Assembly: GCA_009103225.1 (NCBI GenBank)
Contig: RHPI01003728.1
Coordinates: forward strand, 69,719 to 133,718
Length of the DNA: 64,000 nucleotides
Reading direction: 5' to 3'
From: Chlorokybus atmophyticus
Taxonomy: Eukaryota > Plantae > Mesostigma and Chlorokybus algae
The notes below the pieces were generated by a model. The model did not search any database and was not told where the DNA came from. It saw only the letters and a program-made list of their open reading frames with translations. The first letter of the stretch is position 1; each line of letters opens with the position of its first letter. This document shows positions 34,929 to 38,232 of the stretch, one piece after another. A program made the position numbers and the translations under genes.

Positions 34929-35058
34929 CCGCACAAGAGAATGTACTAGGCTACTCAACAATGTCAGTGACCTGCTCTACCAACACGATTGAAGCGCACC
35001 GCACAAGAGAATGTACTAGGCAACACAACAACGTCAGTGACCTGCTCTACCAACACGA
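34929..35058. repeat. Tandem duplication, period 70 bp
   Basis: ccgcacaagagaatgtactaggc..caacaa(t/c)gtcagtgacctgctctaccaacacga at 34929 and 34999, between the convergent kinase and P450 3' ends. Confidence 0.9.
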
Positions 35059-35179
35059 GGGTTGTCCAACTGACTTGCATGGGTCTGCACACACTGCGGC
35101 TTGCAACGTCACCAACTGCACGATCACCTACTCAACCTGAGCAACATTGAATTAACGGAAACTGACAGTGAAGTTGTTG

Positions 35180-37743
35180 TCAACGACAGCATGAGGCGGG
35201 CTGCTCACAGCATACCTTGTCAACTCTTCTCCTTGTCAAAAGGGCCTTGAGACCATCACCAGGGTAGATCGTGCAGAAAACTTTGATCTTGTCGCTAACC
35301 GGTGTCCTGACTCGTTTAATGTCGCACTGTGAACCACAAGGCTTTGTTGAAGAAACCAACACACCGACCAATGACTCGTGTCAGTGAGAACATGCAGAAC
35401 AAAGGCGCTTTATATTTGAGGCAAGAAATTGTGCACCTGAGCGCAAAGCATTGCGGCGAAAAGAATCAGCTGGTTGATAGCGTATTGGTACCCCAGGCAT
35501 GCGTGCGGTCCCACTCCAAATGTCATCCAGTACTTGGCGCAGGTAGTGCCCTCGTCTCTCTCTGGGCCAAACCGATCGGGGTCGAACTTGTACGGGTCCT
35601 TGAAGCCACCCTCCTGTTTGCAAGTTGCAACCATGAGAACTGGTGGGCCCACATTAACAAACTATCCACACCACCTTGCTGTGACCTCACCTCAAAATGC
35701 GAGGGCCAAATGGACCCAATAATCAGGGTGTCCTTCGGGATGACGCTGCCGGGTTGAATTTCCCAGTCCTTGGCAGCCATATGTGGCACCATGGTGACCG
35801 GCGGCCTGAAGCGCAGTACCTCTTTGACAACCTGCACCCAACACACAGTGTGAGTAAACACACAAAGTAAATGAAACCTCCTGAACATGGATAACAAAAG
35901 ATGGGTGCTTCTGTGCATGCAGACTCGACAAGCAGCTAATTTGACCTGGCGCGTGTAGTTCATCTGCTCGACCAGGTCGTATGTAAAGGGTTCTCCATTG
36001 GGGCGAAGCCGCTGGTGCTCGGCCGCAATCTTCTCTTTAACTTCCGGATACTGTGAGAGCAGCGTCATGGTCCAGACCAATGAGCTTGTGCTCGCGTCCT
36101 GGCTCGCAAAGATGAACACCATAAGGAAGTTGCCCATCTCTTCATTGGTGAACCTGACCTCCTCCTTGTCCTTCTTGTCCTCTTTCTCCTCCTCCTGCTT
36201 GTTCTCGTCTTGGCTTGGGTCGTACAGCGGCCCGCCGGGACCCAGCACAACGCGATCCGCCATGCAGCGAGGCTGCGCGCCGGGCTGGCTCATAGCCTCG
36301 ATGGCCGACCCGATGCAACGTGTGAACACGCGCATGATGAGCTTACGGCCCTGCACGCCCTTCCACAACTTGGTCCCGGGTAGCGCCAAAGGGAAGTTCA
36401 CGAGCTGCAGCGCATCCGTCATGTTGTAATATGCCTGCGAGATCTGCTCCAACTCCCCTGGCTGAAGACAGATCACATATGTTACACATGATGATGTTGT
36501 GTAGTATTGGTTAGCGCGAGTGTTACATAGTTTGAGTGGTATACTCGCAACCAAACAACTCAATGCTTCCGTGTAATACACTTCAATCAGTGTTCAAGAG
36601 GCAAGTGCCTGCGTTTGCAGTGTCAAACACACTGCAGTCAAGGTCTCTGAATGAGTGATCAGCTTACTTACTTTCAGGTAAGGGCCGACAAACACGCCTA
36701 CAGAGGTGGCCATGTTCAAGGTGCGGCAGCGGTTCTGGAACTCGACGGGACCCTGCTCTTTGCACTCCGCCAGCCAGCTGTCAATGAAGCCCTGCATGAT
36801 CTCCTCCTGCTTGTCGAGGTAGCTCGCCAGGCCAGACTTGGAGAACAGCGGGTTGAGGCGATACCGCACTCGCTGATGCTTGAATCCGTACTGGAAAATG
36901 AAACTGCCAGGGGAATGCTATATCACTTGAGCTGAATAACAACACTGCATGCACACAGCATGCAGCCAGGGCTTGCTGCGATCGTTGGGTATTATCTCCC
37001 ACCTTTCTGGGGTCATGAGCTGCTTCATAGCAGGGATGGTTGTGAGCTTTGCATATCCAGGTGTAGAGAATATTTTGCGTGAAAGCGCGGTGTTGCCTGC
37101 GATGACTATGAACTTGCCGAGAACGCTGGTGCATGACAGCGGCCCCGCTGACCACATCTTCAGGTAACCGTCAAACTTGGGGTACATCGACTCCACCATG
37201 GTGCCAATGAACGGACATACCGAGGCCTGTATAGCAACCGTAAACATAGCTAGTTACAACTTGCGCCAGCGTATCTCCCAAATCACAGACGGAGCTGCTG
37301 GAACGACCCAAGTCTTGAGCGCCGGTCCAGTCAACGACGATATGATTGTGCTGGTGTGCTGTCATGCAATGAACTACATGGACTTGGAGAAGCCTTGTCT
37401 GTTGCTTGAATCAACATGCTACAACTGACACAATGGCCTGCAACGCGGTGCATGCAACTGAGCCTAGCTGAATGGGTGCCGCAGGAACTCAGCAGTTAAG
37501 CAGTGCCGGCATGCCAACCGTGTAGGTAGACAAGCATGCACAACACGAAGAATAGGCAAGCACATCGGCATCTAACAAAGCAAGCATAAACTCCAGCTGG
37601 CAGCAGCAGCAGTAGCAGCCCCTGTCCGCTACCTGCTCAGCGGCGCCGACCATGGCCCGGCGCTTGCGGTACAGCAGCTGGTCGGCCACGGCGAGCAGCG
37701 CCACGACGCCAGCCACCCACCACCACACCGACACGCCCGCCAT
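35180..37743 (-). CDS. ERG5: Cytochrome P450 sterol C22-desaturase (CYP61/ERG5-CYP710 clan, fungal-type signatures)
   Basis: Membrane anchor MAGVSVWWWVAGVVALLAVADQL; ESMYPKFDGYLKMWSAGPLSCTSVLGKFIVIA; LQLVNFPLALPGT; I-helix FIFASQDASTSS; K-helix VKEVLRFRPP; FDPDRF; heme motif FGVGPHACLG; SDKIKVFCTIYPGD. The last exon boundary is uncertain. Confidence 0.9.
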
Positions 37744-37779
37744 GACGTCCCACCCACACCGTCAACCCCCGTTGCCGAC

Positions 37780-37810
<31 letters not shown>

Positions 37811-38232
37811 AGGCGGGAGCTTACTACGTTGCCTGCCAGTAGCTCAAAACGGCCAGCTGGGCAGAGCGGGAGATCCAAACAAATGCAAATACCCAGTGCA
37901 ACGTACCACATCAAGTCCCCTGAACTGGAGAGTTAACGTCAACTCTTCACTCAAGAGCTTTGAAGCACTTGACTCACATGATGTAAGTCACATTCGGTTG
38001 ATCACAGAAGTGAGTCAACACTCGACTCTCTCTCAGGTTGTCGATGGGGTGAGGTTGAGGGAAGTTACAGGGAGGGGTGGAGTTAACTCAGCCTAGTACA
38101 CACATGTATAGCCTGTAACTCTGAACGATGGTTGTGACGATCAAAGGGCCCGTAGGATTTTTGCCGTTGTGTTGTGCGAGTCAATCTGATGTGTAGTGGC
38201 TGAAATTTCCAAGGGGCTAGCGCAGAATTGCC

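Follow-up and report, generated by a model that had tools for sequence, protein, structure and literature searches.

The P450 gene of Chlorokybus and its transcripts

The window analysed here is a stretch of 64,000 nucleotides of the genome of the streptophyte alga Chlorokybus atmophyticus (contig RHPI01003728.1, positions 69,719 to 133,718). On its minus strand, the listing of open reading frames (ORFs), direct reading of the sequence and transcript contigs delimit a cytochrome P450 (P450) gene of eight exons at window positions 37743..35128. It is probable that this gene encodes a sterol C22-desaturase which forms the earliest branch of the CYP61 (ERG5) type and is not a vertically inherited CYP710, an old transfer being slightly preferred as its source. 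The kind of enzyme is already known; it is the host lineage and the position in the tree that are unexpected.

A word-index search with exon 4 retrieved a public protein (P0001) with 100% identity. The translation of the spliced exons matches this protein exactly, and it corresponds to the Chlorokybus atmophyticus model eukprot jgi/Chlat1/1350 of 506 amino acids. All seven introns are of the GT-AG type. Spliced Logan transcript contigs from four runs of two studies lie on the locus, and one of them, 1833 nt long, shows no mismatches to it. The contigs of sister strains differ from the locus by 3–7%, mostly synonymously. Third codon positions account for 29 of the 32 listed coding differences from these strains, and this bias indicates purifying selection on the Chlorokybus gene. 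The gene is older than the split of the sister strains; it is intact, expressed and nuclear, and its gene model is already annotated.

Contamination of the assembly by fungal or amoebal DNA could be suspected, as two public bacterial metagenome-assembled genomes (MAGs) carry contaminating eukaryotic C22-desaturase genes. This explanation is hardly tenable. The gene lies in the middle of the 64-kb window, where the G+C content is uniform at about 0.51–0.55, and it is transcribed in runs of both studies, including those of the diverged sister strains. Together with the seven introns, the genomic setting and the transcription in diverged strains practically exclude contamination.

The original prediction had placed the gene at 35180–37743. 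The start codon at 37743 stands, whereas the stop at 35180 appears only when the frame is read without splicing: one more intron of 79 nt (35213..35135), skipped in the transcript contigs of three runs, precedes the end of the coding sequence at 35128. The strings quoted in that prediction (VESMYPKFDGYLKMWSAGPLSCTSVLGKFIVIAGNTALSRKIF, ALQLVNFPLALPGTK, SDKIKVFCTIYPGDG, VFVGPYL and QDENKQEEEKEDKKDKEE) were all found in the minus-strand translation.

Exon 1 (37633..37752, minus strand like all the others) encodes residues 1–37 with the N-terminal membrane-anchor helix. Its ATG lies at 37743, and the contigs start at or before 37752. Its limits are based on the contigs of four runs, which join 37633 straight to 37226, on an AlphaFold helix at residues 6–32 and on the agreement of the translation with P0001. 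A 51-nt mini-exon at 37358–37308 (‘...LTGPALKTW’), considered as a source of the PGP hinge, was discarded, being unused in this junction. The limits of exons 2 to 5 and of exon 7 follow from the splice joints, supplemented in exon 4 by the Pfam p450 match. Exon 2 (37003..37226; residues 38–111 and two further nucleotides) contains the CYP61-type block ESMYPKFDGYLKMWSAGPLSC...LSRKIF--STP. Exon 3 (36672..36903; residues 112–189) contains a block resembling substrate recognition site 1 (SRS1), FIFQYGFKHQRVRYRLNPLFSKSGLASY, and the string VFVGPYL. Exon 4 (35946..36461; residues 190–361) encodes ALQLVNFP (36390–36413), a charged loop (36159–36212) and the I-helix signature FIFASQDASTSS (36081–36116). 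The K-helix EVLR and the beta-sheet region are encoded by exon 5 (35691..35831; residues 362–408), which ends with ...IWPSHFE. Exon 6 (35437..35613; residues 409–467) includes EGGFKDPYKFDPDRF and the haem-binding FGVGPHACLG with Cys447 (35491–35520), and exon 7 (35214..35326; residues 468–504 and two further nucleotides) includes SDKIKVFCTIYPGDG. Exon 8 (35000..35134) comprises the last two codons, the stop codon and a 3′ untranslated region (UTR) that extends past 35000.

Around the gene, a (GGC)n/(CGG)n run occupies window positions 37771–37830, just upstream of the transcript start, and no Pfam match was obtained for the long ORFs flanking the gene. At the 3′ end (35000–35058), transcript contigs of X1 and X2 contain a joint that goes back 59 nucleotides with 11 extra letters, which could result from misassembly around a short repeat. 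Small indels are also present in the 3′ UTR of the sister-strain contigs.

Family membership, predicted fold and proposed activity

The Pfam p450 domain (PF00067) was recognised with E-values of 1.7e-22 on the ORF of exons 4 and 5 and 9.6e-11 on exon 6. The features of the P450 superfamily, namely FGVGPHACLG with Cys447, the E365–R368 pair and DPDRF, are present, and all of them are invariant columns in an alignment of 22 diverse family members (alignment A1). The top named homologues are sterol C22-desaturases of Capsaspora, many ERG5/CYP61 fungi, Dictyostelium, red algae and chlorophytes (E-values from 1e-112 to 1e-77), with identities of 33–44%. The Chlorokybus protein keeps 31 of the 31 columns that are invariant in alignment A1. 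They include F305, F307, A308, Q310, D311 and A312 (the QDA core), F440, G441, G443, H445, C447 and G449, as well as G118, H121, R125, F132 and Y140 in exon 3 and E365 and R368 in exon 5. In the rooted tree, where the bacterial and Oscarella P450s fall outside, the protein is part of the C22-desaturase ingroup.

The SRS3 signature of CYP61 and CYP710, F(D/T)F(L/I)FA(A/S)QDA(S/T)(T/S)S, has been described with its D and A as ‘specific and absolutely conserved’ (Chen et al. 2014, PMC4122930). It appears in Chlorokybus as MVFIFASQDASTSS, with the QDA core and its flanks kept and with V at the D/T position as the sole difference. The SRS1 signature from the same source is N-x5-G-x2-H-x3-R-x6-F-T-x3-A-L-x-Y (PMC4122930). 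The corresponding Chlorokybus block, S-FIFQY-G-FK-H-QRV-R-YRLNPL-F-S-KSG-L-AS-Y, retains G, H, R, F, L and Y and carries N to S, T to S and A to G replacements. By its homologues, its invariant residues and its place in the tree, the protein belongs to the sterol C22-desaturase family (CYP61/CYP710).

The AlphaFold model built on alignment A1 has a P450 fold with a mean predicted local distance difference test (pLDDT) score of 85.9 and a predicted template modelling (pTM) score of 0.88. Helix I spans residues 295–326. The charged insertion expected before this helix by the original prediction is confirmed: the loop QDENKQEEEKEDKKDKEE, 18 residues long (273–290), directly precedes it and has pLDDT values below 50 at residues 276–289. 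In place of the usual PGP hinge, the protein has GAA. Among solved structures, that of Synechocystis CYP120A1 (PDB 2ve3) is the closest; it can be aligned over residues 48–470 with an E-value of 1e-27.

By analogy with the family, the N-terminal helix would anchor the enzyme in the membrane of the endoplasmic reticulum and Cys447 would ligate the haem. NADPH-P450 reductase would supply the electrons, and the side chain of a 24-alkyl sterol would lose hydrogens at C22 and C23, leading to a delta-22 sterol. A protein that derives from this family may also have turned to a different reaction or substrate. Its long branch in the trees, the altered SRS1 and SRS3 residues, the GAA in place of the PGP hinge and the extra charged loop would fit such a change. 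It is nevertheless an unlikely one, as no family-invariant residue has been lost, and the QDA core, reported to be specific to CYP61 and CYP710, is among those retained. Purifying selection acts on the gene among strains, and no other family member was found for Chlorokybus, the rest of whose genome was not searched.

Position within the CYP61/CYP710 family

An exhaustive HMMER search of 1.84 billion representatives yielded 130 proteins below 1e-30 and nothing closer to the Chlorokybus protein than 43–44% identity. The closest full-length relative is P0002 from Logan run SRR8832428 (44%), and the exhaustive search yielded none closer than that of Hemimastix (43%). A first tree comprised 74 rows. 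A careful maximum likelihood (ML) tree of 65 rows was computed with the LG+C20+F+G4 model and posterior mean site frequencies (PMSF) and rooted on a bacterial P450. The tail of the exhaustive search supplied the outgroups, one P450 each of Aquabacterium and Oscarella, together with the third clade described below. Two candidates for a bacterial outgroup were discarded as intron-bearing eukaryotic genes. The first, in a Verrucomicrobiaceae MAG (JAIYDP010000233.1; L011:1447-2787), is a C22-desaturase gene of the CYP710 type. The second, in a Deltaproteobacteria MAG (NYXK01000182.1; L012:1644-3117), resembles ascomycete ERG5 (ALELVNIP, SEEIKVFATLFP). Both are most likely eukaryotic contamination of the MAGs.

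The 74-row tree consists of two groups, the CYP61 type and the CYP710 type, and places Chlorokybus on the CYP61 side. The CYP61 type unites fungi, Capsaspora, Hemimastix, Nematostelium and three unnamed sequences. The CYP710 type contains land plants, chlorophytes, red algae, a glaucophyte, most Amoebozoa, Salpingoeca, Amoebidium, Sycon, the nucleariid Nk52 and rotifers. In the careful tree, the clade of the CYP61 type with Chlorokybus received support of 100/100 and the remaining 17 CYP61-type rows 100/95, so that Chlorokybus is their sister. The whole CYP61-type clade is nested among CYP710-like rows of amoebozoans and opisthokonts (96/90, 95/96). The quick and FastTree runs placed Chlorokybus in the same way, and none of the fragmentary matches grouped with it.

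Several other placements in these trees deserve mention. The CYP710 proteins of the green lineage are not monophyletic: those of land plants (CYP710A) fall together with Amoebozoa (Balamuthia, Luapelamoeba, Gocevia), and those of chlorophytes (CYP710B) with red algae, Salpingoeca and Amoebidium. The bdelloid rotifers Rotaria and Adineta possess CYP710-type genes. The sequence P0015 from a Protostelium nocturnum transcriptome nests in the Mucoromycota-like fungal CYP61, together with Endogone, which suggests RNA of prey or a contaminant, or a transfer. An ENA metagenome contig of 18.7 kb (k141_2514000, L006) encodes an intronless CYP61-type protein (P0020) amid dense genes, mostly without a family, which would fit an unknown eukaryote with a compact genome, or perhaps a large virus.

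Constrained trees were compared with the approximately unbiased (AU) test. On the full alignment, grouping Chlorokybus with land plants was rejected with a log-likelihood (lnL) difference of 63.6 (p=0.0065), and grouping it with chlorophytes with a difference of 81.6 (p=0.00018). The ML tree proposed as a check of the original prediction shows no nesting of the protein inside the CYP710 of green algae or plants. The placement was also evaluated on a fixed backbone with 126 attachment points, using 383 columns without the 111 N-terminal residues and the LG+F+G4 model; this backbone derives from the full alignment, and the test is therefore not fully independent. The position as sister of the CYP61 type was the best of the 126 (bootstrap proportion by resampling of estimated log-likelihoods, bpRELL, 0.947), and the runner-up was 19.6 lnL units worse. 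The land-plant stem (−49.9, p=0.0076), the chlorophyte stem (−54.2, p=0.0010), the glaucophyte (−49.8) and the fungal stem (−45.0, p=0.003) were far behind. Besides the best placement, only two near-root placements had p>=0.05, both of a kind that long-branch attraction would produce.

Length changes and motifs lead to a similar picture, with CYP120A1 used solely to judge the ancestral indel states. The two-residue insertion ALQLVNFP before the PG(T) turn was found in CYP61-type rows only and is absent from the CYP710 type, the third clade described below and the outgroups; in Chlorokybus, this block reads DALQLVNFPLALPGTK. The N-terminal CYP61 block (D/E)S.xPKF(E/D)xY...W..G is present as ESMYPKFDGYLKMWSAG, and the short ‘SRKI(L/F)--xxP’ as LSRKIF--STP. 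In exon 7, the proline of ‘PT(I/L)’ of CYP710 and the outgroups is replaced (FCT), like in the CYP61-type ‘FAT’. Three derived states of the CYP61 type are thereby shared by Chlorokybus: the insertion, the block PKF(E/D)xY and the missing C-terminal proline. The protein lacks both the two additional residues of plant, chlorophyte and red-algal CYP710 in ‘SR..F..N’ and the two-residue deletion ‘FQ--GF’ of the CYP710 type. Green CYP710A/B is marked by four length states: two additional residues in ‘SR..F(S/A)N..’, a short form ‘G--F(L/M).FP’, the ‘FQ--GF’ deletion and ‘PT(I/L).P’ at the C-terminus. None of the four occurs in Chlorokybus, which shows the opposite state each time.

Other features are not those of the remaining CYP61-type proteins. 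VFVGPYL is common to Chlorokybus, the CYP710-type rows and the third clade and is not found in other CYP61-type rows. Where Chlorokybus has VFVGPYL, HFEEGGFKDPYKF, H378, R472 and GYQYA, those rows have VFCGxY, HDPxxY.NPD.F, Y378, H472 and GKEYA. The string VFVGPYL had been judged CYP710-like, and this likeness is real; VFVGPYL, H378, R472 and GF.DPYKFDPDRF are ancestral states that were lost in all other CYP61-type rows. Since the states of the other members are missing, Chlorokybus represents a stem or sister lineage and neither a crown member nor a fungal CYP61. Taken together, the protein is not a CYP710A or CYP710B; within the CYP61 (ERG5) type, it branches off first.

The claim that the blocks fit ERG5 much better than CYP710 holds for the motifs and indels and does not extend to overall identity, which averages 35.0% with fungi, 35.3% with chlorophytes and 32.9% with land plants. 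Of 18 diagnostic columns, six are as in CYP61, four as in CYP710 and eight as in neither. Exon 2 is the most CYP61-like part (mean identity of 40.2% with CYP61-type versus 24.7% with CYP710-type rows), and exon 6 is the most CYP710-like exon (36.1% versus 49.2%). Its best matches are scattered over many lineages, including unknown protists, Coccomyxa, Amoebidium and the glaucophyte, and for this reason its likeness to CYP710 seems ancestral rather than green. Such a mixture of states is presumably how a real early branch of CYP61 would look. A chimera in which exon 6 with its flanking introns came from a resident green CYP710 was considered and set aside as a leading explanation: the matches of exon 6 are spread widely, the region without the N-terminus still groups with the CYP61 type, and the second ‘shared’ intron of this idea is 1 nt off.

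A vertical CYP710 orthologue that evolved fast or convergently, and is CYP61-like in looks only, would account for the long branch, the near-equal identity to chlorophytes and fungi and the closeness of exon 6 to CYP710. It would also agree with one intron in common with chlorophytes and with the weak support of the clade in a free search without the N-terminus. However, it is improbable. The plant and chlorophyte placements were rejected by AU tests both on the full alignment and without the N-terminus, and the likeness of exon 6 is not specifically green. Furthermore, two length changes (the additional residues in SR..F..N and the FQ--GF deletion) would have to be reversed and ALQLVNFP gained independently.

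The original prediction had offered a transfer from a fungus as one origin of the gene. On this view, the Chlorokybus lineage would have acquired a fungal ERG5 that diverged rapidly afterwards. Chlorokybus lives in soil and on rock, with fungi nearby, and such rapid evolution could shift its branch to a basal position in the clade. A free AU test of Chlorokybus with fungi did not reject their grouping (lnL difference of 17.5, p=0.21). A fungal donor is quite improbable all the same and finds no support in the topology, in which Chlorokybus is the sister of the whole CYP61-type clade and is excluded by its 17 other rows. On the fixed backbone, the fungal stem was significantly worse. VFCGxY, HDPxxY, Y378, H472 and GKEYA of the fungi and their kin are missing, with ancestral states in place of the first four, and no intron position is common to Chlorokybus and the three fungal genes examined.

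Origin of the gene and comparison with known systems

The presence of a CYP61/ERG5-type gene in the genome of a streptophyte, the core of the original prediction, is borne out by the fully supported clade, the AU tests and the derived indels and motifs. Between an old transfer from a non-green eukaryote and the sorting of paralogues, a slight preference is given here to transfer, and sorting-out is nearly as likely. An old acquisition from a non-green eukaryote bearing a CYP61-type gene, not a crown fungus, would have been followed by intron gain and fast divergence. In favour of transfer, the CYP61-type clade is nested in sequences of Amorphea, and all other sampled Archaeplastida (plants and green, red and glaucophyte algae) are of the CYP710 type.

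Some findings weigh against the reading of the gene as an early CYP61-type C22-desaturase acquired by transfer. The terminal branch of Chlorokybus is long (1.47 versus a median of 0.6), and a branch of this kind may take up a basal position artefactually. After removal of the first 111 residues, a free search still placed the protein with the CYP61 type, but with a support of 39 in the Shimodaira–Hasegawa-like approximate likelihood ratio test (SH-aLRT); consequently, much of the signal for the clade resides in exon 2. Because of the long branch and the N to S, T to S, A to G and D/T to V changes in the SRS1 and SRS3 signatures, the substrate or even the reaction might differ. Neither an enzyme assay nor a sterol profile of Chlorokybus was found in the searched literature. 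With regard to transfer itself, Chlorokybus is the sister of all sampled CYP61-type proteins, which leaves no sampled donor lineage, and both types occur inside Holozoa, Amoebozoa and Holomycota, as old paralogy predicts. Moreover, the intron after E408 (phase 0) occupies the same alignment column and phase in the CYP710B genes of Coccomyxa and Chlamydomonas eustigma. The estimated probability of this coincidence by chance is about 0.08, and it is weak evidence.

Retention of an old paralogue would mean that an early eukaryote, or at least the archaeplastid ancestor, possessed both types, that one of them survived in each lineage and that Chlorokybus is the sole sampled archaeplastid keeping CYP61. 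The mixed distribution fits this scenario: Capsaspora (CYP61) stands against Salpingoeca, Amoebidium and Sycon (CYP710) in Holozoa, Nematostelium (CYP61) against Dictyostelium, Balamuthia and others in Amoebozoa, and fungi against Nk52 in Holomycota. No sampled species was seen with both types, a pattern that sorting-out predicts. The sister position of Chlorokybus with its ancestral states also agrees with retention. The same applies to the E408 intron, given that no intron position is common to Chlorokybus and the four fungal and amoebozoan genes compared; the genes of Capsaspora and Marchantia are intronless. Retention, on the other hand, requires separate losses in glaucophytes, red algae, chlorophytes and other streptophytes. 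The CYP61 clade is nested in amoebozoan and opisthokont rows (95/96) and is not sister to all CYP710, the common intron lies within chance, and the closest Mesostigma relative among the cluster representatives is only 26% identical and falls into a third clade. Retention is a real possibility without being the probable course of events. It may also be suggested, more tentatively, that CYP61 and CYP710 represent two old lineages which existed side by side at an early stage of eukaryote evolution and were sorted lineage by lineage, with the Chlorokybus protein as a ‘living intermediate’.

The Mesostigma viride protein mentioned (P0353, Mesvir1/1174) forms the long-branched third clade together with P0320 of the choanoflagellate Diaphanoeca and P0327. 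These proteins keep the signature F(L/F)FA(A/S)QDATTSA, and their PERF region is degenerate. A canonical CYP710 was not seen by these searches in the two earliest streptophyte lineages, the Chlorokybus genome beyond the window not having been searched.

CYP710A is known as the streptophyte subfamily and CYP710B as that of green algae (PMC11586672), and CYP61 and CYP710 are regarded as equivalents (PMC4122930). In the searched literature, no paper ties Chlorokybus to the phylogeny of CYP61 or CYP710. It seems that the two are more than a fungal and a plant version of a single gene. An early-branching streptophyte with the other type, along with mixed Holozoa, Amoebozoa and Holomycota, suggests old paralogy with repeated sorting or transfers between eukaryotes. 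The mixture of derived CYP61 states and ancestral CYP710-like states makes the protein a natural test case for residues that determine the preference for ergosta-type or stigmasta-type sterols, and the sterols of Chlorokybus are worth profiling. If the two lineages are indeed old, the protein would reveal in what sequence the features of the ERG5-type enzyme arose, with the N-terminal block and ALQLVNFP first and the haem-domain states still ancestral. Chlorokybus would then be the only known archaeplastid retaining the CYP61 lineage and may form delta-22 sterols with an enzyme nearer to that of the ergosterol pathway than to that of the stigmasterol pathway.

Among the known systems, bacterial CYP120A1 has the P450 fold in common with the Chlorokybus protein and is a member of another family. 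The CYP61 clade has as its nearest outgroups the basal CYP710-like proteins of Amoebozoa and Opisthokonta (Dictyostelium P0035, the Filamoeba cluster P0243, Nk52 P0150 and Sycon ‘CYP524A1’ P0209). The Dictyostelium ‘HFQEGGY’ matches the Chlorokybus ‘HFEEGGF’ in its unusual length and sequence. Unlike Chlorokybus, these basal proteins have neither the ALQLVNFP insertion nor the PKFxxY block and keep the C-terminal proline. CYP710A and CYP710B belong to the same wider family and presumably catalyse an identical reaction. They share with Chlorokybus VFVGPYL, GF.DPYKFDPDRF, a TIYPGD-like C-terminus, the QDA core and, in chlorophyte genes, one intron position, with identities of 33–36%. In contrast to them, Chlorokybus lacks the two additional residues of ‘SR..F..N’, the short ‘G--FL.FP’, the ‘FQ--GF’ deletion and the proline of ‘PTI.P’.

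The CYP61/ERG5 proteins of fungi, Capsaspora (‘sterol C-22 desaturase’, P0011), Hemimastix (P0010) and Nematostelium (P0009) form one clade with the Chlorokybus protein, whose identity to the closest members is 41–44%. Common to them are PKF(E/D)xY...W..G, ALxLVNFP(L/F)ALPGT, ‘SRKI(L/F)--(N/S)xP’, the loss of proline in ‘FxT(I/L)(Y/F)P’, F(I/L)FASQDAS and the Cys pocket. Chlorokybus differs from these proteins in branching earlier, in H378 and R472, in VFVGPYL (VFCGxY in the others) and in HFEEGGFKDPYKFDPDRF (HDPxxYxNPDxF in the others). It also has V for T in ‘xTF(L/I)FASQDA’, no PGP hinge and the 18-residue charged loop before helix I. Finally, its gene contains seven introns, compared with none in Capsaspora, and its host is a photosynthetic streptophyte.

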